Positions 2,735-38,475 of a stretch of 49,350 bases of DNA are shown here, piece after piece. Both the position numbers and the translations under genes were made by a program. Position 1 is the stretch's first letter, and the number at the start of each line of letters is the position of its first letter. The DNA is from Cyanophora paradoxa CCMP329. Taxonomy: Eukaryota > Plantae > Glaucophyta. The notes beneath the pieces are model-generated. The model had not been told where the DNA came from. It ran no database searches and was given only the letters and a program-made list of their open reading frames with translations. The DNA is taken from assembly GCA_004431415.1 (NCBI GenBank), contig QPMI01000309.1, positions 1 to 49,350 of the forward strand, written 5' to 3'.

Positions 2735-3466
2735 TCCGCCCGCGATGTCGATCCTAGGCCTCTTCGCGCCGGCGCTGCAGCTGGCGCTCGCGCTCTGCCT
2801 CCCGCCGCTAATTATAAAGGGCCTCGCTCAAGCAGGGACGCGAGCACTCGCCCGGAGCGTCACGTGCACGGGTGCACTGCACGCTGGACGGAAATTGCTG
2901 CATGCGCACCCGCCGGCCTGGCGCGGTGCGGCGCGGCCGCGTCTTTGAACCGATGTCCTCGAGCTCGAGCTCGAGCTCGCCGAGCAGCACCGTGGCGCTG
3001 AATTGGCCGGGTCGACGTCGCGGGCTGCTTTAGCGCGAGACAAGCTCCCGCCAACTACAGCTGTCGATTATATATACCTCAGGCAGCCGCATGATGGCCC
3101 GCATCCACGCGGCTCGAGCTCGACGCGCGGCCGCGGCGACTGGCCGCGCGCGGGGCTCAGCGGCTACCGCTATAGAGAGGCTACCGCTCCTGCAGCGTCC
3201 TGCAGGCCTGGCTGCAGCTCCTGCTCAGGCTGGCACAGCCTGGCAGGCTGCTGCATGCGCACGCGTACGTACTACGTACGGCCTCGCCGACGGCGCCTTT
3301 TCGAATTCAGCAGCGAGTTGTGGGGGACCCGGGGGGTATACGGCTAACACACGCCCGGCGTCGCCGGCCCGACGGAAAAAAACGGCATGATTGTGAAAAT
3401 TAAAGCGCCGGACCGCCGGTCCGCCGGCGCCGCCCGGCGGCCGCCGCCCGCCCGGCCGGGCCGCCG

Positions 3467-3574
3467 TGTAGTGCGCCAAATAAAATGGCGCGCCATCTTA
3501 TTTTTATGGCGCACGCTTTTGAGCCATCGCAGAAAAAAATGCGCCGGCCAGCGCAGCCGGAGCTTGCGTTGGGG
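3467..3574 (+). repeat. Left terminal inverted repeat of the transposon
   Basis: Reverse complement of 8042-8150 with one substitution and one 1-nt indel. Confidence 0.95.
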
Positions 3575-3631
3575 GGGTTACTACGACTCGCAGCGTATGA
3601 TGCAATAGTACTATACTACTAGGCTAGTCCA

Positions 3632-3819
3632 ACGATCATGAGTCATGAGGCTAACTAGTCGGGTTCTAAAGTTGAACTACGATCATGAGTCATGAAGCTT
3701 AGTAGTCCGGTTCTAAAGTCGAACTACGATCATGAGTCATGAAGCTTAGTAGTCCGGTTCTAATGTCGAACTACGATTATGAGTCATGAAGCACATTAGT
3801 CTGGTTCTTAAAGCGAACT
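3632..3819 (+). repeat. Subterminal tandem repeat, 4 x 47 bp
   Basis: Unit ACGATCATGAGTCATGAAGCTTAGTAGTCCGGTTCTAAAGTCGAACT, with variants, starts at 3632, 3679, 3726 and 3773. Confidence 0.95.
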
Positions 3820-4156
3820 ACAGCCAGGGTTCTTGAAACGCACGCACACAAGTAGACTAGCTATAGTCGTGTTCAAGATCTAAAATTGTACTATGACAAT
3901 GAATGTAGTATCAATAAAGTATAGTAGTAGTAGCAATAAAGTATAAATTATAGTACATGATTCCTAAAGAAGAAGAAGAGTATATATGTATAAGACACGC
4001 CCCAGCCGAGCGCGCGCTGCATGCAGCCTGGCAGGACACAACGCATTCCCAACGCATGCGTTGCGTTTCCGTTGCACACCCGGTTCCCTCTCTCAGTTCC
4101 CTTTCAATTTTCGCATCTCTGTCAGTTCCCTTTCAAGCAAATTTCTGACAAACACT

Positions 4157-7100
4157 TCATACACCATGCCTAGTGTTGGCCATATTCTGCTGGAATGTCT
4201 GCATCATCATCTGAAAGTGCTGCATCATCTGCTGCATCTGCTGCATCTGCTGCTCCATGCTGGGTGCCGGGGGCATAACTGGGCGCACAGGGCTCGAGGA
4301 CATAGCTAGCCTAGACTGAGGGGCTAGTGGGTAACATGGTGCTGCCAAGGCGGCTTCAAGCTCTGCCTGCGTGTAACTTGGCCCGGAGTTGGGGAGGACA
4401 GGCACCCCGTGTGTGTCCCGAGGTGCGGGCCCAACTCGAACTGGCCCACGAATGGGAGAGCTGGATCCAGAGGATGGCAGGGTAGAAGAAGAGAAAGACG
4501 GCCCCAGAGGGAGTGGGGACCAATAACGGGAACCGCCCCTGGGACTGGGCCAAGACCCCTCGCAATTGGGGCTGACCCAACAGGGGGCAGCACCACCCCA
4601 GGTGCATAGTGCGGCAGAGGTGGCGGGCGTGGGCCGGGCGGAGCCGCAGCACGGGCCGGGCCGGGCGGGGCCGCAGCAGGAGACGGGGCGGGCGGGGCCG
4701 CAGCAGGAGACGGGGCGGGCGGGGCCGGAGCGCGGGACAGGCCGGGCGGGGCCGCAGCAGGAGACGGGGCGGGCGGGGCCGCAGCAGGAGACGGGGCGGG
4801 CGGGGCCGGAGCGCGGGACGGGCCGGGCGGGGTCGCAGCAGGAGACGGGGCGGGCGGGGCCGCAGCAGGAGACGGGGCGGGCGGGGCAGGAGCGCGGGAC
4901 GGGCCGGGCGGGCCCGCAGCAGGAGATGGGGCAGGCGGGGCCGCAGCAGTAGACGGGGCGGGTGGGGCCGGAGCGTGTGCTGTGGCTGCTTGGGCTGCAC
5001 GTGCTGCGGCTGCTTGGGCTGCACGCTGAGCGGCATCCTCCTCCTCTTTCTTGAGATAAGCTAGAATTCGCAGCTTGAGAGCCTCCTTGTTACCTGTGTG
5101 CGGCAGGTTTGCAGCACGGAGGAATGCCTGCAGGGGCTTGTTGGTGGTGTGCATGCCAGGGGCCAGAAGCTGCGAGAAAAAGGAAATTAGAAGAGGAAGT
5201 CCAACGCAACTGCACCGCAAGCGTTGAATTGAAGAACGCAAACGTGTGCTTTGCGTTGCTACAAAAACGCACCCGTCGTATCCCATCAACAGACGGGATG
5301 GGGCCGTACTTGTCGTCGACAGGGCCATCTGCTGTTGCATTGTCGGCGACGATCGATTCTGCCGTTGCGCCACGCTGGCGCGGAATGATTTTCTCCCCGA
5401 CACTGGCCGTCTCCGGGTAGATGCGCTCACGCTTGTTCTTGCACCCGTACTTGCTGCACTGGCAGCTCGAGCAGCACACCAGGCCGCTTGTGAAACAGCC
5501 GCATTTCTCTGGAAGGCAGCCATCCCTGCACTTGCACGGGTCCACGTCGAGACCGGGGGCCTGGCCACAGAAGCTCTTGAATGCTGTCATGAGAGGAACG
5601 GTGCCGTTCATTATGTTGTTCGCACGGTTCTCCTCAATTGTCTTCCAGATTGTCTGCATACCTGCACCAGTTTTTTGATGAGTGTGCAACATTCGTGCAA
5701 ATGGGACTACCCCTGCACGTACCGCCCACGAGGTTCATGTTGATCAATTGTGCTCCCTGAATGGGAGTGTCAATGAAACCCGCCATCGTCCTGATCGTGT
5801 AGAGGCCATGCGGGACGTCCACCACTTCTGTGACGATCCCAGGTACCCTTGCTTGTAGGAGGACGTGCATGCCGAGCTGTTTGACAAGGACGGCCACACG
5901 ATCCCCGATACTGTAGATAACAGGACCTGCTCCCTGCTTCTCCGCGCACGCCTTCATCTGGTCTCTGTACACGGCAAGCCGTGCGCATGCCTGGACATTC
6001 CCGAATGCACGCACAAACTGATCGATCTGTCCAACGCATGCGTTGAGAATGCGTTGGATGAGAGTGCGACAAAATTTGCAATGAAAAGACGATCAGCAAC
6101 TTCGCCTGCGCACTTTGATTCGCAAGCCTCCAAGATGAGGAAACGAGTGTAGTGGTCCTGCGTTCGCCGTTGTTCGTTACCGGATGCAGAAATCTGCGCA
6201 TGACCGTGCCGAAAACTGACCTTTATGGCCAGGACAAATGCCCAGAATCGCGGAATGACGTCCGTGACAAAGACCGTCTTGTAGCAGCCCGGAAATTCGG
6301 GATCCGGGATTTTCTTCTCGTACCGGCACACGTGCACTGCTTGCTCCCAGTACCAGACCCTCTCGAGCTCGCCTGAGCTCTCATTCCACTTCCACCCCGG
6401 CAGCCACTCCTGCAACTCCCAGGTAAATTTTAACACGCGGCCAGGCGCATCAATAACAACATCTCACCATGCGGGGGCAGGGGCCCCATGCCTTGGGCAT
6501 CTCAAAGAAGTCGACAATTGCCCGATCCCAGAAACCAATCACCTTGATTGGATGGAGGATCCCGTCGGGCTGCCTCCTCTTGTTCTTGAGCTTGCAGACT
6601 GGACTGCAGCCCCATCCCCACGACCGCAGGTGAGTCTTAGTCACGATTGGTTTGTCGGCGGACAGAAAACTCACCAAATCTTGACGTAGATGCGGACCAG
6701 GTAGCGAGGAATCGCGTACCTTTGCTTCGCATTGTTGTATACACCGGTGCCACCTTTGTGCCCGCTCTCAAGGTGTTCGCGCTGCGCACGATCATGACCG
6801 CGTCACAAACAGTGCAATGCAGTGGACATAAAAATTAAAATGTATTCTGTTCAACGCATGGTCAACGCATGTGTTGAGAATGTCCAACGCTAGCAACCCA
6901 ACGCTTGCGTTGAAGATGCGTTGCGCGTGCGCAGAGAATTGCGTTGTACCGCGATCGCACCTGGATGCAGATGAAAATGTCCTCGTCACACACCAGCTCC
7001 CTGCCCAGTGGGGGGGCGTCGCCCGAATTTCCTCGCTTCAAGCGGTTGTCAACCTGCTTCTCCACCACCAGCCGAAGCTTGCGCCTTGGCCGCGGGTTGG

Positions 7101-7893
7101 GCATGGCGAGCTCCTCCGCTGTCAGGTTGTCTGTCGGATCTGGAACCTCGCGCAGCGTGTACTTCCCCCTCATGAACTCGCGCCAATTCTTCACCCGCTT
7201 CACATGCTCTGGGCTGCCGCTGGGCTCGGGCGCGTCCGGGTTTTCGAGGATGTACTTAACGTGTTCGATGTCGGCGCGAGATAGCAGCACCGCTCCGGGC
7301 TTCACACGCTGTATAGCGGCTCGATATTCTTCGAAAGTTACGCGCTGCACTGATGCTGCTGGGACCGGTTCAGCGCCTCGGGATTCGGCGAACATCCGCT
7401 GGACTCGGTGGCGAAATTCGGTGGTGTCGATGCGCTTGCCGGCTGCTGCGGCCGAGCCCTTCTTTTGTTGTTGCTGCCTCGAGCTCGAGCTCGAAGCCGC
7501 TGCCTCTGCTGGCTGTGATTCTGAAGCTGCTGCGCCATCTGCGCCCACAGCTGCAGGTGCTGGTGGCTGCTTCCGAGGGCGCCCGCGCGGCCGCGGCGGT
7601 TCACTAGTATTTGGCCGCTTTCGATTACGCGGCTTACTGCTCGAACTCGCCGCCTGTCCGCTCGAGGTGGACGGCGCCTGCTGGCCGCTCGATGGTGCTG
7701 ACTGCTGTTGGTTGCTCGATTGCGATGACGATGCCGCTGCTGCGTTGCTGGGCATGTCGATGCGAATGTTAGGAAACAGAGTCTTGCACAGGAAGTTATT
7801 GCCGCAGAGCCCGGACAGATTCTCTGCGGGTGGACACCTGCATTCGAACTTGTTGGGAAGGTCTCTGACATCTGGATGCTCCCACCACCTCAT
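4157..7893 (-). CDS. Spliced Ginger/KRBA2-type integrase (transposase): AT-hook, H2C2 zinc finger, partial integrase core, CXC domain, SAP domain, Pro-rich and Gln/Met-rich tail
   Basis: AT-hook RPRGRPRK (~7570-7596); spliced REHLESGHKG...YVKIC|PVC (H2C2); FWDRAIVDFFEMP (first catalytic D); FVLAIK|DHYTRFLILEACESKCAGEVA; YSIGDRVAV...VPGIVTEV...GLYTIRTMAG; CKCRDGCLPEKCGCFTSGLVCCSSCQCSKYGCKN; LQAFLRAANLPHTGNKEALKLRILAYL (SAP). Start and last intron are tentative. Confidence 0.8.
4640..4970 (-). repeat. Coding 27-bp minisatellite (AAAPPAPSP / APPGPSRAP units) inside the transposase
   Basis: Repeated GCAGCAGGAGACGGGGCGGGCGGGGCC-type units with a three-unit higher-order pattern. Confidence 0.9.
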
Positions 7894-8041
7894 TGCTGAT
7901 GTGCCTAGGGCCGCGCCTTCGGGCTCGGTGCGCGCGCGCGGCTCCCCGACCGCTTCCCGCCAGTGCGGTCCTATACCGGTAGCCCGGCGGTAGGCTATAA
8001 TGATAGGCGATTTCGATCGCGACAGCTAGCCTAGCAGTACT

Positions 8042-8150
8042 CCCCAACGCAAAGCTCCGGCTGCGCTGGCCGGCGCCTTTTTTTCTGCGATGGCTCAAAA
8101 GCGTGCGCCATAAAAATAAGATGGCGCGCCATTTTATTTGGCGCACTACA
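8042..8150 (-). repeat. Right terminal inverted repeat of the transposon
   Basis: Reverse complement of 3467-3574. Confidence 0.95.
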
Positions 8151-8430
8151 CGCCGGGCCGCCGCGGACGTCGACGGCGCGGCCGGCGCGCGGTATCGAAT
8201 TCGAAGCGCCTGGGGGCCGGGGCTCGGGAGCCTCGGGCTCGACTCCGGCGGAGTCCAGCGGACGTCTCCGGGCCTCCGGCCAACCGTCCGGCGGTCACCT
8301 CTGCCAGGCTGCGCGCACGTGTTTGCAACCGGCGGCGGCTCGCCTGCCCAGGCTGCCCGCACGCCTGCGCCACAGGCGGCTTGCCTGCCGACCGCGGGCG
8401 CGTCGGGAAGCTTGGAGCTTGGTGCATTCA

Positions 8431-17894: not shown

Positions 17895-18020
17895 GAGCTC
17901 GAGCGGGGAGCAGCAGTCACGCCCCGTCCGTAGCCAGAAAAGCCCGTGCCTGGCCGTGGCCGGGGCCTGGGGGTCGCTCCCGGCCACGCATTGGCTGTCG
18001 CAGACGAGGAAGCCTGGACT
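17895..18020 (-). pseudogene. Degenerate partial copy of the neighbouring Cys-rich membrane-protein gene
   Basis: 17971-18017 matches 19387-19433 with one mismatch (PGFLVCD[S/N]QCVAGSD) and ~17898-17950 resembles ~19117-19167 (GRDCCSPLE). No signal peptide or TM exon accompanies it. Confidence 0.65.
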
Positions 18021-22595: not shown

Positions 22596-25644
<3,049 letters not shown>

Positions 25645-25882: not shown

Positions 25883-26404
25883 CGCAGGCGCCCGGCGGCG
25901 GCGAGCTCCCGAGGCTGGGTCCCCGCCCTCCCCTCGAGTTTGCCGCTTCCGGTGCCGCCCTGTCGCGTATTTTGTCTCAGAATTTGAGTCAAAAGATATC
26001 GAAGCTTTTAGCCTCGTGCATATGCAGCCCATGGCCACAAAATATTTTTTGCTCTCCAGTATACCGCACAAATCCATAACGTCGGCTCAAACAAATAGCT
26101 TAGTCTTAAATGCGAGTCTTAAATAGCTTGCGAGTGAGTTGCGACGTCGACTCGGCGAGTCACTGCAGCTGATCATGATCGGCCTGGGCGGGCCAGGCCT
26201 GGCCCTTTCAAGCGAAATTCAACTTTTAATTCAAGGTTGCGAAATTTGTTTTTGTTTTCAAGCGACTTTTCAAGCGAATTTCAAGTTTTTTGTTTTTGCT
26301 TTGATAATTACGTATACCCGGCGGGTAGACGTAATTATCAACACTGGACCGCCGATTGCGTGATACCGACACTGATACGTGACCAAACGCGTATACCAGG
26401 TACA

Positions 26405-26486
26405 TAGGCTCTTTCCCGGGTACTAGCTAGACGTGACCATATATATGGTCTGAGGCCTAGGCTCTTTCCCGGGTACTAGCTAGACG
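26405..26486 (+). repeat. 29-bp direct repeat pair
   Basis: TAGGCTCTTTCCCGGGTACTAGCTAGACG at 26405-26433 and 26458-26486. Confidence 0.9.
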
Positions 26487-27150: not shown

Positions 27151-30100
27151 ATGGGCCGTCCGCGAGCGAAATGCTGGGCCAACGCGGACTGTTCGGGAAC
27201 TCCCGAGCACACGATCGACAAGTGCGCACTGAGCGGCCAGCCTGGCAGATGCATATGGTTCACCTGGGTTCGGCTGCAGCTCCGGGGCAAACTAACGTCA
27301 ATCGCGCATGCGCAGGGGCGGTCTCGTGTCTGCTATTTGCTCGAATTCCTCGTACCTTGCCGGGAATCAGCGAGGCAGCAGCACTTGCGTTCCAGCCAAG
27401 CTGCTGTGTTACACTTCAACGTACGTTCGAATTAGCTCCTTTCGATTGCGAACCACGCACCTGAGTTCGGTTCGGCTCATTCGTTCGCCCGATCAGCGAT
27501 TGTTCGGAGGACTTCTCTGTCGGAAAAGACCCTGCTTCGGGCAGCTTTGTCAGCCAGTAGTGCGGATGTTTTTTATTCAAATATTCTAACTACTATACGA
27601 GCAATGATCATGTGTATACGGTCGCAGCCAAGCGGGGACGATGTCCGACGCGGAAGCGTTCGCTCGCTGCCCTGTGCGGCGCTCCTCTAGATCTAGATCT
27701 GAACTCGTCTCCCGTTCGCTTAGCCAATAATGGACGTGTGCTTATGCGTCGTACATGTGCAGGAAGGCACTTTGAGCTTCAAGAATGGCGACAGCGCCAC
27801 GTGCCACGCCGCTCATCCGTTCATCGAATGCTACACGAGCTTCGACTGCACCACGACCGGGGAGGTGTCGGAGCGCACCTACATCCTGGGAAATGACCCG
27901 TGCGCCTGCCATTTATACATTAAATTGTAACTGATATTAAACTCTTGCCGCTATGATCTGATCGTACATGCTTTCCGGATCCTCACCTGGGCATGCACGG
28001 GATGCATGTTCAGTTCAAAGTGTCCCGACTCAGCGAACTCGTTCAAAAATGGCGGGGATACGACATGCAAGCCAGCCAACTTGCTCTGTTTTGAAGACAG
28101 GTGAGCCCCCGCATCTGGCGCCATGGATCCCGGACCGTCGCAACTACATACCTATATGTGTGCATATATGTGCTGATCGATTGCAACGTGCGCGGCCTGC
28201 AGCAACTGCAGCGGCACGCCCGCGGTTGGCAAGGATGCCTCAGGCAAATCCGTCGACTTTTAGTGCGTTTGCTTTAATTCACAGTCGATTCTCATATATA
28301 TATAGCGCTTTCTTCCGACGCGCTCATCTCTCAAATAAATGAACATAATCTGACCACGTGGCGTTTTGCAGCCAGCCAGAGGGGATTACGGACGAGGAGG
28401 CTTGGGCCCGCTGCCCGGTGCGCTTCTGAGCGCACGTACTGTTTTCTGACACTTTAGATCTCGATCTGCAACACCATCCGTTCATCGGAAGGGCTCATCT
28501 CACCATCGTTTCAGGCGGGCACGCAATCGGTCAAGGAGGCACATGCACTTTCAACTGCGTGCAAAGCAGACGTTCACTTCGGCACTTTATGGTAATCAGC
28601 AGGGCATTGCACCCTCGATCCCCATTGATCCACTGTCTTTGCTGCACGCCCGCTCAGCTACTCCGACCTCGAGTGCCGCTCGACCGCTACGTGGGCGTTC
28701 GACAAGTCGCAGTGCCCTGCAGACAGTCTTGCCGTGCGAGCTGCTGCCCCGCTCCTTGTCTTAGCTTGCCGCGATCTTGCGTATACGTATACGTCTAACG
28801 TTAACGTTGCGCATGCTATTCTTGCAGACAATCACGCGAGGCGTATCCGACGGCAAATGCACACACTCCAAGCTCCTGTGGTACGCTGCAACCATCCACA
28901 TATCGATTGCGGTGGAGAGGCATCGATGCGCCGTGCGCAGCTTTTCGGGCCGCGACTGCTCCGAGAACGTTACGGTCGGCAAAGACCCCGCGTCGGGCAG
29001 CCTCGTCACTGAGTAGTGCGCGATCGCTCGGAGGCTAATGCTAATAAATAACGATTTGCTGACAGATCTAGGAAAGACATCGGCAAAGTTGTTGCGCGCC
29101 ACTGAGCATTCGAACGCAGCCAGCCGGAGAACATGTCCGACTCGGAAGCGTTCGCCCGCTGCCCTGTGCGGCGGATTCTTTGCATTCTTTTCCCGCTCCC
29201 AAACGCAGCATCTATAACCGTTCTACGCGCGCATTTGCGGGGCATGCGCAGGCTGGCACTCTAAGCTTCAAGGATGGCGGCGCTGCAGAATGCAGCGCTG
29301 CTCATCCGTTCACCAAATGCTACAAGAGCTGGGATTGCGCAGCCGCGGGGTCGGAGGGCGACGTCAAGATCGTCCTCGGAACGGATCCGTGCGCATGCTG
29401 TTCTAAGGGTTCATCCGCTTATCTGTGATCATGACGCGTTCGTCTTCGCTGCATCGCTATCGCCGTAACCTCTGCAGCGCGAACTGCCCAGCTGGCACAA
29501 TCAGCTACAGCATCAACGAGAACAAGACCTGCATTCCCTGGGCCCTCCAGTGCTTCTCCGACAGAACTTGCACGGGCACGCCAGCCATCGGCAAGGACTC
29601 AACTGGCGGCCTGTACTCTCACTAGTGCGACGACTCTTGGTCCCCATGCCCCGTGAACAGTCAACGGATCAGCACCTGAATGCGGCGATCGTGCAGCCAG
29701 CCAGAGGGGGTCACGGACGAGGAGGCCTGGGCCCGCTGTCCGGTGCGCATGCGCATTGCTAGCTTTTGCACGCACGCCATACGTCTTCCCTTGTGTCGAC
29801 GTCTGGCATGCGATCATGGACGCTCTATTTGTAATTATATATATATTAATTATAAACCTCTTTAGGCCGGCACGCTCTCAGTTCAGGAAGCCGGTTCGAC
29901 CACGTGCCGCGCGAGCGACGTGCATGGGGGCACTGCCTGGTGCTCTGATTCCCTATTTTCGCTGTCCTCTGCTCTAATTCCTAATATTATTTTATTAACG
30001 ACTTTCTTTACGTCTTGGTCCTTCGCAGCTTTTCGGATTTGAAATGTAGCTCGTCTCCAACTTGGGCGTTCGACAAGTCAAAGTGCCCGGCTGATACTGC

Positions 30101-33100
30101 AGCCGTGCGCATTTGCATTCGAATTCTGCGGGCACCCCATACCAAGATCTAGAACCGCTCAATCTGCCCACTATTCGCGTTTCCGACATCCTGCAGATCA
30201 AGTCGAATGACGTCAACTCGGGGCAGTGCACTCCCAACAAGCTTGTCTGGCGAGCCCGTTATGGCGCGCCGAACGAGTCTCGCGCTGAGGAGTGGCCCGC
30301 GCAGCTTCTCGGGCGCGAACTGCACGCGTGCCAGCACAATCACGAGCTTCGAGCAATAGTGCGCACGCGATCGCTCCTATCGCACGGTTGCCTTTATTGC
30401 AATCGCCATAGAGGATGCTGCTGCGATCGCCCCAGCGTTTCAGTGCTATTAATACTTATTATTTTGTAAAGACCTTTCTGATCACGACGTCGACCCACAC
30501 AATTCGCAGCCAGCCAGAGGGGGTCACGGACGAGGAGGCCTGGGCCCGCTGCCCGGTGCGCCTCTGAGCGCACTGTTTTCTGGCGCTCTAGACCTCGATC
30601 GATATCTGCGGCACCTTTCGTTAATCGGACAGCTAACATCGCCATCATTTCAGGCGGGCACGCAATCGGTCAAGGAGGCGCATTCAGCTGCCTGCAAAGC
30701 AGACGTTCACTTCGGCACTTCGTGGTAATTAAATCAGGACCTTAAGCTTGGCCATGGCACCCTCGATCCCCATTGATCCACTGTCTTTGCTGCACGCCCG
30801 CTCAGCTACTCCGACCTCGAGTGCCGCTCGACCGCTACGTGGGCGTTCGACAAGTCGCAGTGCCCTGCAGACAGTCTTGCTGTGCGAGCTGCTGCCCCGC
30901 TCCTTGTCTTAGCTTGCCGCGATCTTGCGTATACGTATACGTCTAACGTTAACGTTGCGCATGCTATTCTTGCAGACAATCACGCGAGGCGTATCCGACG
31001 GCAAATGCACACACTCCAAGCTCCTGTGGTACGCTGCAACCATCCACATATCGATTGCGGTGGAGAGGCATCGATGCGCCGTGCGCAGCTTTTCGGGCCG
31101 CGACTGCTCCGGAAAAGTTACGGTCGGCAAAGACCCCGCGTCGGGCAGCCTCGTCACTGAGTAGTGCGCGATCGCTCGGAGGCTAATGCTAATAAATAAC
31201 GATTTGCTGAAAGATCTAGAAAAGACATCGGCAAAGTTGTTGCGCGCCACTGAGCATTCGAACGCAGCCAGCCGGAGAACATGTCCGACTCGGAAGCGTT
31301 CGCCCGCTGCCCCGTGCGGCGGTTTCTTTGCAATTGCATTCTTTTCCCGCTCCCAAACGCAGCATCTATAACCGTTCTACGCGCGCATTTGCGGGGCATG
31401 CGCAGGCTGGCACTCTAAGCTTCAAGAATGGCGGCGACGTTGACGTTGTTGCACTTGAGGGCGGCGACGTCGACGATGATCGTGATGAAAATCATAACAG
31501 CTCCAGAATGGACGAACGGATGCGCTTTCAGATGCAAATTCAGCTTATTAGCGCTATCCAACGGTTCAAAGACAGCGGCGATAAGAGTTACAAGGAAATT
31601 GCCGAAATGTATGCGCGGCTGCAGGATTTATCCTCCATCAACGACGGCGACGATCGCGACGGCGACGGCGAAGATCGCGATATCGACGCGAAGTGCTTCG
31701 AAGCTCACCCGTTCACCAAATGCTACAAGAGCTGGGATTGCGCAGCCGCGGGGTCGGAGGGCGACGTCAAGATCGTCCTCGGAACGGATCCGTGCGCATG
31801 CTGTTCTAAGGGTTCATCCGCTTATCTGTGATCATGACGCGTTCGTCTTCGCTGCATCGCTATATATCGCCGTAACCTCTGCAGCGCGAACTGCCCAGCT
31901 GGCACAATCAGCTACAGCATCAACGAGAACAAGACCTGCATTCCCTGGGCCCTCCAGTGCTTCTCCGACAGAACTTGCACGGGCACGCCAGCCATCGGCA
32001 AGGACTCAACTGGCGGCCTGTACTCTCACTAGTGCGACGACTCTTGGTCCCCATGCCCCGTGAACAGTCAACGGATCAGCACCTGAATGCGGCGATCGTG
32101 CAGCCAGCCAGAGGGGGTCACGGACGAGGAGGCCTGGGCCCGCTGTCCGGTGCGCATGCGCATTGCTAGCTTTTGCACGCACGCCATACGTCTTCCCTTG
32201 TGTCGACGTCTGGCATGCGATCATGGACGCTCTATTTGTAATATTATATATTAATTATAAACCTCTTTAGGCCGGCACGCTCTCAGTTCGGGAAGCCGGT
32301 TCGACCACGTGCCGCGCGAGCGACGTGCATGGGGGCACTGCCTGGTGCTCTGATTCCCTATTTTCGCTGTCCTCTGCTCTAATTCCTAATATTATTTTAT
32401 TAACGACTTTCTTTACGTCTTGGTCCTTCGCAGCTTTTCGGATTTGAAATGTAGCTCGTCTCCAACTTGGGCGTTCGACAAGTCAAAGTGTCCGGCTGAT
32501 ACTGCAGCCGTGCGCGTTTGCATTCGAATTCTGCGGGCACCCCATACCAAGATCTAGAACCGCCCAATCTGCCCACTATTCGCGTTTCCGACATCCTGCA
32601 GATCAAGTCGAATGACGTCAACTCGGGGCAGTGCACTCCCAACAAGCTTGTCTGGCGAGCCCGTTATGGCGCGCCGAACGAGTCTCGCGCTGAGGAGTGT
32701 CCCGCGCAGCTTCTCGGGCGCGAACTGCACGCGTGCCAGCACAATCACGAGCTTCGAGCAATAGTGCGCACGCGATCGCTCCTATCGCACGGTTGCCTTT
32801 ATTGCAATCGCCATAGAGGATGCTGCTGCGATCGCCCCAGCGTTTTAGTGCTATTAATACTTATTATTTTGAAAAGACCTTTCTGATCACGACGTCGACC
32901 CACACAATTCGCAGCCAGCCAGAGGGGGTCACGGACGAGGAGGCCTGGGCCCGCTGTCCGGTGCGCGTCTGTTCATAAACTCGAGCGCATTGTTTTCCGG
33001 CGATAGCCCGCTGCCTTGTGCGGCGGTGTCGCTGGGCGTGCATCCGTTCCCCGCTCTCAAATGCAGCCAACCTTTATTCCCGCACATTTTCGGCACAGGC

Positions 33101-36100
33101 TGGCACGCTAAGCTTTACGAATAGCGGGGCTGCCAAGTGCTTCGAAGCTCACCCGTTCACCAAATGCTACAAGAGCTGGGATTGCGCAGCCGCGGGGTCG
33201 GAGGGCGACGTCAAGATCGTCCTCGGAACGGATCCGTGCGCATGCTGTTCTAAGGGTTCATCCGCTTATCTGTGATCATGACGCGTTCGTCTTCGCTGCA
33301 TCGCTATCGCCGTAACCTCTGCAGCGCGAACTGCCCAGCTGGCACAATCAGCTACAGCATCAACGAGAACAAGACCTGCATTCCCTGGGCCCTCCAGTGC
33401 TTCTCCGACAGAACTTGCACGGGCACGCCAGCCATCGGCAAGGACTCAACTGGCGGCCTGTACTCTCACTAGTGCGACGACTCTTGGTCCCCATGCCCCG
33501 TGAACAGTCAACGGATCAGCACCTGAATGCGGCGATCGTGCAGCCAGCCAGAGGGGGTCACGGACGAGGAGGCCTGGGCCCGCTGCCCGGACAAGTGCGC
33601 GTTAAATGGACCACCGAAACCACCGATTGCGTTCCCGATCCTGTAAATGATTCTGATCGATTGTTCGACAGAACTCTAGCGTTCAAGGACAGCGCAAACA
33701 TTACCTGCAATTCTAACGTTAGGAAAGGAGGAAACTGCTACGAGGTGATTCTGATGATTCGTATTCATATATAATTAAATATTCGGGTGCGCAGAGCACC
33801 AACTGTGTGGAGGTGGAAGAATCGAAATCAAGTCGCTGCCGACACTTGTTCAACGTTATGGAATCCCAGAGGAAACAGCTGCATGCAGCAAAGTTGAAGG
33901 AAGCGGTGATTCTATTTCAAATCCTTCAAGCAAAAGGATCCCTTAAACGATGCGCCTGCCTTGCATGGCTCATTTGTGCGACCAGATGGCGCTTGCCGTG
34001 CAGTACGGGTGTACAAGCAACGATTTGGACGTCGTCTACAAGGTGACTCGAGCATACGACGCGTGAGCCGTGGCCACATGCACAGAACTCTCTTTGCCAG
34101 AAGGCTAACATCTTCGTGGGATGCAGTTCGAAGTGTCCCGACTCAGCCGCCTCGTTCAAGAGAGATGATGATTTTACAAGCGGGGCATGCAAGCCGGCGG
34201 GTCTGCTGTGCTACAACAATCGGTGAGCTGGCCTTATCCAATCAAATTGGCTTGAAATTAGTGACAAGTGCTGACTGGGCCGGTTGGAATGCTGACCGAA
34301 TCGGCAGCAACTGCAGCGGCACGCCCTCGGTTGGCAAGGATGCCTCGGGCAAATCCGTCGATTTTTAGTGCGTTTATTTTTATCACACTTGTTACACAAT
34401 CCTTGGGACGTCGACTGTCCTTGCCAAGCACATGCACAGTCAATCCTCATAGCGCTTCAGATTCGCTACGACGCACTGATCTCTCAAATATCTGATCACG
34501 TGGCGCGACGCAGCCAGCCAGAGGGGGTCATGGACGAGGAGGCCTGGGGCCGCTGTCCGGTGCGCAATAAAATCTCTAGGCGTTCCGGGCTATCGATTCA
34601 TATATTTTTCTTTTTTTGCGCGAGCGGATCAGAATCCATATGCATTTCGGGCTCGAAGTTTCGAGCGGGATCTCTAGCTCCTCGAAAGCTAGACATTGGT
34701 TCAATATTGATTCTGCAGAAAGAAGCCGGGGTAGGCTTGATCATGAACGTGGGAGTGTTGCCGTAGTACATTGTGTAAAGCCCGGCCGTGGCCATGGACC
34801 CTCCGAGCTCTCTCATGAAATACAGAGCTCATTTTAAGTTTGTTCGGGTTGCAGGCCGGCACCTTCGGGGTTCGAGAAGTTGGCTCCACAGCGTGCAACT
34901 CTGAAGTTCACGGCGCTGCCTGGTATTTTGAGTACTTCGATTGCTTAAACTGTCGTTCTTGACGATCTGACGTCGACCGGTTTCCTGCGCAGCTACACCG
35001 ATCTGAATTGCGAGACGGCTTTCACGTGGGCGTTCGACAAGTTTAAATGCCCGGCCGACACTGTTGCCGTACGCATTTAACTTGCATTCAAATTCTGCGA
35101 GCAATCCAAGCCCAGCACGGCTCAATCTACCGTTAACACGCGTTTCCGCCATCCTGCAGATCAAGTCAAATGACGTTAATTCGGGGCAGTGCACTCCGAA
35201 CAAGCTTGTCTGGCACGCTTGAGCCCGGTACGACGACCCGAACGGATCTCGCGCTTAAGCGTGGCCCGCGCAGCTTTTCGGGCGCGAATTGCACGGGTGC
35301 CAGGACAATCACGAGCTTCGAGCAGTAGTGCGCTCTTCTGTTTTTTGCATGACCGCTTCTCTGGATCTAGATCTTGCAATTGCCGGCGCCATATATATAG
35401 GCGTTGCTGATGGGAGCGTGCCGGCGCCGGCATTACAGTTCAAAAGAAGTTTTCTTACCCCCGAATGTCGCAGCCAGCCAGAGGGCGTCACGGACGAGAA
35501 GGCCTGGGCCCGCTGCCCGGTGCGCGTACCAAGGAATCACCATGCGCATGCGCAGAATCCGCGGGTTCAGGCTTGCTTAACTTGAACTGCGATTGCAGGG
35601 CGGCACCCTCGGATTCAAGGAAGCCAACTCGGTCAATTGCAGCTTGAACGTGTATGCTGGGGTTGCCTGGTTAGTGCAATGTTATTTGTGTTGCCGGTGC
35701 TGTCGGGACGTTCTGCTGATTTCAGCGCCCATGGCCACGGGAACTGGTTCGCGGACGTTCCTGCGCAGCTACTCTAATCCGAATTGCGAACGTGCCCCCA
35801 CGTGGGCGTTCGACAAGTCAAAGTGTCCGGCTGATACGGCAGCCGTGCGCGTTTGCATTCGAATTCTGCGGGCACCCCATACCAAGATCTAGAACCGCTC
35901 AATCTGCCCACTATTCGCGTTTCCGACATCCTGCAGATCAAGTCGAATGACGTCAACTCGGGGCAGTGCACTCCCAACAAGCTTGTCTGGCGAGCCCGTT
36001 ATGGCGCGCCGAACGAGTCTCGCGCTGAGGAGTGGCCCGCGCAGCTTTTCGGGCGCGAATTGCAAGGGTGCCAGCACAACCACGAGCTTCGATCAGTAGT

Positions 36101-38475
36101 GCGCTCTCTCCTATATAGTAATTGCATGGCAGCTTTTAGATCGCGAGATCTAAATCTTGCAATTGCCGGCGCCATAGGCGTTGCTGATGCGATCACGAGC
36201 TTGCCGGCGCCGGCATTTCAGCGCAAAAGACGTTTTCTTACGTATACCCCCGAATGTCGCAGCCAGCCAGAGGGCGTCGCGGACGAGGAGGCCTGGGCCC
36301 GCTGCCCGGTGCGCGTACCAAGGAATCACTTTCTTGTCGCACTGCGGCATGCGCAGAATTCGGAGGTTCGGGCTTGTTTGAATTGCTATCGCAGGGCGGT
36401 ACCCTCGGATTCAAGGAAGCCAACTCGGTCAATTGCAGTTCAAACGTGTATGCTGGGGTTGCCTGGTTAGTGCAATGTTATTTGTGTTGCCGGTGCTGTC
36501 GGGACGTTCTGCTGATTTCAGCGCCCACGGGAACTGGTTCGCGGTCGTTCCTGCGCAGCTACTCTAATCGATATCCGAATTGCGAACGTGCTCCCACGTG
36601 GGCGTTCGACAAGTCAAAGTGCCCGGCTGATACGGCAGCCGTGCGCGTTTGCATTCGAATTCTGCGGGCACCCCATACCAAGATCTAGAACCGCTCAATC
36701 TGCCCACTATTCGCGTTTCCGACATCCTGCAGATCAAGTCGAATGACGTCAACTCGGGGCAGTGCACTCCCAACAAGCTTGTCTGGCGAGCCCGTTATGG
36801 CGCGCCGAACGAGTCTCGCGCTGAGGAGTGGCCCGCGCAGCTTCTCGGGCGCGAACTGCACGCGTGCCAGCACAATCACGAGCTTCGAGCAATAGTGCGC
36901 TCGCGATCGCTCCTATCGCACGGTTGCCTTTATTGCAATCGCCATAGAGGATGCTGCTGCGATCGCCCCAGCGTTTCAGTGCTATTAATACTTATTATTT
37001 TGTAAAGACCTTTCTGATCACGACGTCGACCCACAAAATTTGCAGCCAGCCAGAGGGGGTCACGGACGAGGAGGCCTGGGCCCGCTGCCCGGTGCGCCTC
37101 TGAGCGCACTGTTTTCTGGCGCTCTAGACCTCGATCGATATCTGCGGCACCTTTCGTTAATCGGACAGCTAACATCGCCATCATTTCAGGCGGGCACGCG
37201 ATCGGTCAAGGAGGCGCATTCAGCTGCCTGCAAAGCAGACGTTCACTTCGGCACTTCGTGGTAATTAAATCAGGACCTTAAGCTTGGCCATGGCACCCTC
37301 GATCCCCATTGATCCACTGTCTTTGCTGCACGCCCGCTCAGCTACTCCGACCTCGAGTGCCGCTCGACCGCTACGTGGGCGTTCGACAAGTCGCAGTGCC
37401 CTGCAGACAGTCTTGCTGTGCGAGCTGCTGCCCCGCTCCTTGTCTTAGCTTGCCGCGATCTTGCGTATACGTATACGTCTAACGTTAACGTTGCGCATGC
37501 TATTCTTGCAGACAATCACGCGAGGCGTATCCGACGGCAAATGCACACACTCCAAGCTCCTGTGGTACGCTGCAACCATCCACATATCGATTGCGGTGGA
37601 GAGGCATCGATGCGCCGTGCGCAGCTTTTCGGGCCGCGACTGCTCCGAGAACGTTACGGTCGGCAAAGACCCCGCGTCGGGCAGCCTCGTCACTGAGTAG
37701 TGCGCGATCGCTCGGAGGCTAATGCTAATAAATAACGATTTGCTGAAAGATCTAGAAGAGACATCGGCAAATGTGTTGCGCGCCACTGAGCATTCGAACG
37801 CAGCCAGCCGGAGAACATGTCCGACTCGGAAGCGTTCGCCCGCTGCCCCGTGCGGCGGTTTCTTTGCAATTGCATTCTTTTCCCGCTCCCAAACGCAGCA
37901 TCTATAACCGTTCTACGCGCGCATTTGCGGGGCATGCGCAGGCTGGCACTCTAAGCTTCAAGGATGGCGGGGCTGCAGAATGCAGCGCTGCTCATCCGTT
38001 CACTACGTGCTACACCGACACAAGTTGCGAGGGTCCTGGAATTTCCGTCTTTGACCAGTCAATGTGTCCGCTCGGCACTGCAGCCGTTCGCGTGCGTCAT
38101 AGGCCGGTCTCAAACATTCGCCGGTCTGCGCATACCAAATTCGCAGACGATCGATATCTCGACGCAAAGCCAGGGCCTCTGCGCTCCCCTGAGCCTTCTC
38201 AACGACGAGATGTCTGCGATCGATATCGACGAGGACGCAGTGTCCGAGGCTCGCTTGACGCTTTTCTTACGTGCCGCAGTGCCCTCTCCAAGCTCGGCTT
38301 ATTGAAACAGCTGCAGGGCACGCAGGAGGTGGACTCTGATCATGATTACGCCGAATTCGAAACGGCCAGCGCTGAATCGCTTTGCCAATGTCACGAGGTG
38401 CGAAAATGTGTCGAATGTTGAGTTTCGTCTTCTTATATTTATTTGAAGCAGTCCGGGTTCTTGGAATGCGCATGA
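27151..38475 (+). CDS. Large (roughly 1,700 aa) Cys-rich tandem-repeat protein built from short-exon cassettes; family not recognised
   Basis: Exons splice in frame through GT/GC-AG borders, for example EY|QPENMSDSEAFARCP|AGTLSFKDGGAAECSAAHPFTKCYKSWDC...GTDP|ANCPAGTISYSINENKTCIPWALQCFSDRTC...SHY|QPEGVTDEEAWARCP. Units are ~100-110 aa with 8 Cys. Apparent TAG stops are split TA|C codons. Exons at 33795-34042 and the last two exons are tentative. Confidence 0.8.
27628..37849 (+). repeat. 14 dispersed copies of a 46-nt hub exon plus kb-scale near-identical cassette duplications
   Basis: Hub exon starts: 27628, 28372, 29120, 29697, 30510, 31268, 32104, 32915, 33544, 34514, 35474, 36263, 37046, 37804. 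Near-identical blocks including introns: 28734/30882/37418, 29550/31957/33397 and 30113/32518/35853/36649. Confidence 0.95.

Follow-up and report, generated by a model that had tools for sequence, protein, structure and literature searches.

The window analysed here is a stretch of 49,350 nucleotides on contig QPMI01000309.1 of Cyanophora paradoxa CCMP329, and its positions 27151-38475 hold, on the forward strand, a real, intact and almost unannotated gene for a lineage-specific family of four-cysteine repeats (Table 1). A hand-built model joins the exons into 1,657 amino acids with 116 cysteines and no internal stop; the phases chain consistently, and the coding frame is unbroken over 63 introns (median length about 92 nt), while the gene's other two frames contain 13 and 36 stops. 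Fifty-eight of these introns are of the GT-AG type, and the other five are GC-AG introns at 30250, 32655, 35213, 35990 and 36786, the same place in all five C-type cassettes, where a cysteine codon is split. The start methionine lies seven codons ahead of the first cysteine, as in paralogue g11214. Whether the last exon is read through or interrupted by two more introns, the encoded protein ends in an acidic tail, as does paralogue g18047, and has about 1,660 amino acids with 29 four-cysteine units.

Cassettes of several exons are separated by copies of one short exon, the hub. The first-pass annotation had listed cassette types A, B and C in a given order together with 14 hub copies, and all of these are confirmed, each hub being preceded by CAG. 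The hub length of 46 nt given there holds for 13 of the 14 copies, which are followed by GT, but not for hub 9, whose donor comes 5 nt later (51 nt). Shuffled controls gave no hub-like 46-mers. All cassettes begin in phase 0 after a hub and finish in phase 2 before the next. For the insert in the second A cassette, protein homology searches found no protein homologue; a second single-copy contig, which differs from it by a 3-nt deletion at 31653, suggests a related sequence elsewhere in the genome. Within an intron of cassette D, 33795-33905 is an exon-like, optional, frame-neutral piece of phase 0/0. When included it preserves the frame but disrupts the four-cysteine pattern, and it was excluded from the model; it may be a further captured fragment or an exon of optional use.

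Table 1. Features of the four-cysteine repeat gene (positions of the window; hubs numbered along the gene)
Feature	Position	Strand	Remarks
Whole gene	27151..38475	+	64 exons, stop 38305; 66 exons if last exon is spliced on, stop 38475
N-terminal exons	27151-27221, 27316-27420, 27497-27559	+	no signal peptide
Hub 1, class E	27628..27673	+	further class E: 29120-29165, 31268-31313, 37804-37849
Cassette A'	27763..28262	+	3 exons
Hub 2, class G	28372..28417	+	further class G starts: 29697, 30510, 32104, 32915, 33544 (51 nt), 34514, 35474, 36263, 37046
Cassette B, copy 1	28515..29015	+	4 exons
Cassette A, copy 1	29252..29624	+	2 exons
Cassette C, copy 1	29866..30358	+	4 exons, one GC-AG intron
Cassette B, copy 2	30654..31163	+	
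Cassette A, copy 2, with insert	31406..32031	+	3' part is annotated fragment tig00001307_g8125
Insert in A, copy 2	31436..31687	+	in-frame, about 84 aa, acidic ends, single-copy in short-read DNA
Cassette C, copy 2	32271..32763	+	
Chimeric intron	32961..33098	+	start of B intron fused to decayed 3' end of class E hub and A intron
Cassette A, copy 3	33099..33471	+	
Divergent cassette D (A'-like)	33672..34367	+	
Cassette C'	34855..35327	+	
Cassette C''	35599..36098	+	carries roughly 300-nt tract 35803-36104, 97% like C
Chimeric cassette	36395..36894	+	5' half C'', 3' half C; switch in second exon near 36599
Cassette B, copy 3	37190..37699	+	
Terminal cassette	37942..38475	+	last unit and acidic tail; two possible endings, stop 38305 or 38475

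Copy number, selection and expression

Is such an array an artefact of assembly? The first-pass annotation had left room for this, and two DNA runs, of 2012 and 2024, rule it out. The insert (31397-31720), the junction after hub 8 (32939-33164) and the stretch from D to C' (about 33570-35207) are covered by contigs without differences at about 1x depth, and pieces of A, B and C are found in both runs at 2.4-3.2 times the single-copy depth, fitting the three assembled copies; neither collapse nor mis-join is seen. Twenty DNA runs contain 85-90% of the sampled words. One cassette arrangement dominates: where a comparison of haplotypes and strains had been suggested, the short-read runs of 2012 and 2024, in which rare variants are invisible, hold a single one. 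Between cassettes pN/pS is 0.18-0.70, with no pair above 1 and with 0.18-0.34 in the most recent copies, and the cassettes are under purifying selection.

In two RNA runs no contig mapped to the locus, which is not proof of silence. Could the gene be a recently silenced or dying copy, whose repeat turnover is real but whose useful protein is no longer made? The lack of RNA would fit, as would the 15-kb island of about 55% GC in which the gene sits between flanks of 70-84% (intron GC is 0.53 versus 0.84-0.92 in the neighbouring gene), the tolerated foreign insert of 84 amino acids and the lack of a signal peptide. However, the 64 exons are free of stops and frameshifts and their splice sites are unbroken, the most recent duplicates still keep their low pN/pS, and both the insert and the deletion after hub 8 preserve the frame, and we regard a silenced copy as rather unlikely. 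We suppose instead that the protein would be made under conditions outside those sampled by the RNA runs.

The four-cysteine module and its relatives

The module follows the pattern C[YF]x5C-loop-CP-x14-16-C over 43-63 amino acids, short and long units alternating. Its four cysteines are invariant and none of them adjacent, with spacings of 5, 12-32 and 14-16 and no CxxC pairs. The two subrepeats per cassette drawn earlier are probably half a unit out of the structural register, while the statement that this modular Cys-rich protein could not be assigned is borne out: searches of Pfam, NCBIfam, PDB sequences and the ESM Atlas gave nothing usable. Queries in database and fold searches were single exons or proteins that the searches had found; the joined model served for the frame check, for local comparison with the paralogue proteins and for cutting the units for a tree. 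A profile of exon translations, run against 1.84 billion representatives, found five related proteins, all of them C. paradoxa models, and one of them, tig00001307_g8125, is a 110-amino-acid fragment of the present locus. A further protein homology search gave Cyanophora self-matches only, a weak result since it was length-limited. P0006 and P0007, whose domain content is unrelated, were rejected as chance matches. The paralogues P0004/P0005 (tig00020601_g11729, g11728) and P0003 (tig00021073_g18047) show a regular short/long alternation or mostly short units. The models of P0001 and P0002 end at a TAG which overlaps a splice donor in the structure of the present gene, and thus they are probably fragments of larger genes. 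Judged from these sequences, the family seems to be small and limited to Cyanophora, an undescribed repeat family almost absent from the annotation.

What is the fold of such a module? Structure models (pLDDT 85 and 78) find their best matches among disulfide domains, and the cysteine positions agree by the end-points of the alignment ranges. Six TB-type entries are among the structural matches. Among known systems, the TB (TGF-beta-binding, 8-Cys) domain stands close to the module, with its relatives in properdin (short-TB domain), fibrillin (hybrid 2 and TB4), LTBP1 (TB3) and follistatin/FSTL3 (N-domain). The TB fold has two small sheets and one helix with disulfides 1-3 and 2-6, and the module was compared with it by alignment end-points. 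TB domains have eight cysteines, or six in the short form, including a CC or CCC run (PMC3306419, PMC6736995), whereas the Cyanophora unit has four non-adjacent ones, and no sequence match to TB domains of Pfam or PDB was found. We infer that each module probably folds into a mini-domain, mostly beta in structure and TB-like in topology, with two disulfides that close it. It may even be a true minimal two-disulfide relative of the so far animal-only TB/follistatin-N/properdin domain, used in a 29-fold array in a glaucophyte protein. The 46-nt exon with the helix and the third cysteine would then be the hub at which paralogous loci recombine, each within itself and with one another, and chimeric binding domains would be the product; we think all this distinctly doubtful. 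Were the fold homologous, this domain, regarded so far as an invention of the animal extracellular matrix, would have a much earlier origin; our literature search found no paper that names these genes or reports a TB-like fold in anything but animals. The Greek key of beta/gamma-crystallins gives a higher rmsd (mostly 2.8-3.8 A), one unit spans one and a half motifs, and neither a Pfam Crystall match nor paired Greek keys were found.

The four invariant cysteines of each unit, and the lack of a signal peptide here and in two paralogues with a similar start, would also suit intracellular metal-binding units that are not disulfide-bonded. Against this, there are no CxxC pairs, the spacings are those given above, and the best fold matches are disulfide domains with agreeing cysteines; metal binding is in our opinion quite unlikely. 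Cys-rich tandem chains with a CPxGT motif are known in protists from GCC2/GCC3 (Ephrin_rec_like) proteins, ciliate i-antigens and Giardia VSPs. The Cyanophora protein shares the motif and the chain with them but lacks CxxC, a Pfam match, a signal peptide, a transmembrane helix and a GPI signal.

The hub exon and the growth of the array

Hubs fall into two classes, E (hubs 1, 3, 6 and 14), which is always ahead of an A-type cassette, and G (the other ten). Among 36 pairs of class G hubs with unlike neighbours on both sides, which are not independent of each other, exon identity is 94.5% and drops to about 30% past the splice signals in the introns, a large contrast. Four-fold sites of hubs differ at 0.09 within class G and at 0.64 between G and E, and therefore these sites are free to vary and not frozen by selection; pS between the bodies of unlike cassettes is 0.56-0.75. 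Repeated exchange at the hub is the simplest reading of its homogeneity. The hub is the only high-identity sequence common to unlike cassettes and sits inside a domain. Thus, crossovers there would fuse half-domains of different types, and the locus offers a clean case of a short shared exon as a crossover point, with halves of unlike domains fused in frame. Loose ends and joints in DNA contigs that match nothing in the window reveal additional loci, in which hub and C-type exons of near-identical sequence have different introns around them.

The listed order of cassettes is right, but it is less irregular than was thought and reads N, A', [B A C], [B A+insert C], [B deleted, A], D, C', C'', [C''/C B A-terminal]. 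It is indeed more than a simple head-to-tail repeat, being a higher-order array in which hub recombination joined unlike cassettes. Blocks of 1.3-1.4 kb are 99% identical (36599-37970 with 30063-31434, and 29300-30561 with 31703-32966), and the limits of near-identical tracts fall within a hub or next to one (hubs 4 and 7 versus hub 9, for example), within the second exon of C and within the first exon of A. Since tracts end in these two exons as well, about three motifs are prone to crossover, the hub among them, and the idea of cassette shuffling at the hub holds, with many breakpoints elsewhere. The chimeric intron after hub 8 is joined at a 3-nt GCG microhomology (about 33000-33002), and thus a B cassette was deleted there and a third B-A unit was once present. 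We propose that the array grew as a higher-order (B-A-C) repeat, whose blocks would be swapped when unequal crossover or gene conversion strikes the hub or either of two further conserved motifs beside a CP. Every cassette is joined to the hub before it and to the hub after it in the same phases as all the others, so that block exchange leaves the frame intact; such exchange would have homogenised the hub and produced chimeric long domains. Tandem-repeat genes of the mucin, filaggrin and apolipoprotein(a) type also have phase-matched exon blocks remodelled by unequal crossover, and higher-order repeats, conversion tracts and in-frame gain or loss of blocks are common to them and the present gene. 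Here, in contrast, a lone 46-nt exon inside a domain is the high-identity sequence between unlike cassettes.

Does the locus then generate diversity, as the first-pass annotation proposed? The evidence is good for hub-centred recombination over evolutionary time, and we find none for programmed or ongoing diversification. Programmed DNA diversifiers of the VLR, VSG or DGR type vary in arrangement between clones or cells, a variation not found in the two DNA runs. Such systems also use silent donor cassettes or a dedicated enzyme; the cassettes here all lie in one frame of one gene, and the window showed no enzyme of this kind. A fast, selected diversifier of DNA, making a recognition or decoy protein for an arms race and polymorphic between strains or cells, would explain hub homogenisation that extends to loci outside the window, chimeric domains and variable loops. 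But the junction contigs of 2012 and 2024 are identical and at single-copy depth, no cassette pair has pN/pS above 1, many breakpoints are outside hubs, the protein has no anchor, and no recombinase or reverse transcriptase ORF was seen in the gene's flanks within the window; such a diversifier is very unlikely. Phase-compatible, interchangeable exon blocks are also a feature of Dscam-type splicing, and with every cassette starting in phase 0 and ending in phase 2 any skip from hub to cassette or cassette to hub would keep the frame and could give many isoforms. This RNA-level generator seems very unlikely to us: the two RNA runs gave no contig on the locus, the introns are short with strong sites, and several cassettes are nearly identical, so that skipping would alter length more than specificity. 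Slow germ-line repeat turnover under purifying selection, rather than a programmed generator, would account for the array.

Location, function and neighbours

The proposal of a surface or recognition protein finds no footing in the conserved N-terminus, which lacks a signal peptide. A hydropathy scan saw no signal peptide, transmembrane helix or hydrophobic/GPI tail, the highest 19-residue window reaching 0.88 and none exceeding 0.9, and upstream there is no hydrophobic exon spliceable at a canonical site. An in-frame stop lies just 5' of the ATG with no canonical acceptor between, and thus a surface receptor lacks support. In our judgement it is moderately probable that the gene is single, fixed and intact and belongs to a small family specific to Cyanophora, that it encodes a soluble chain of 29 modules and that its repeats turn over slowly. 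A missed 5' exon or unconventional export may bring the chain into an oxidising compartment; alternatively, it may bind metal. Cyanophora has a cell cover, flagellar hairs and mucocysts (PMC6704402, PMC6212826), and a tentative guess for its role is that of an elongated protein, either structural or for multivalent binding, in the cover, the hairs or the mucocyst content. In the literature, where the structures are described (PMC6704402), we found no names for mastigoneme or mucocyst proteins of Cyanophora, and the four-cysteine family is a candidate for them.

The genome of C. paradoxa is probably haploid with many short introns (PMC6704402), and according to the supplement of the genome paper the contig also carries a thioredoxin reductase (g8124) and a histone deacetylase (g8127), in agreement with the flanks of the gene. 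The island as cargo of a transposon or virus was rejected: there are no terminal repeats between its flanks, no viral relative and no metagenome match to the hub. Searches for RNA families in the window found none. Thioredoxin reductase g8124 (22739-25642, +) ends in K-K-G-C-TGA-G-TAA, the Gly-Cys-Sec-Gly end of animal-type selenoprotein TrxR, although Rfam found no SECIS at the gathering threshold. At 3427-8188 there is a low-GC element that resembles a DNA transposon: it has terminal inverted repeats of about 150 nt (3427-3574 and 8042-8188, 91%) and a 47-nt tandem repeat, and its ORFs show a SAP domain and a weak CXC-like match. Upstream of the gene, a 41-nt hairpin and a perfect 29-nt direct repeat (26301-26341 and 26405-26486) are possibly transposon remnants, and close to a divergent promoter region a sequence of roughly 35 nt occurs twice, at 17984 and 19399, with about 1.4 kb between the copies.
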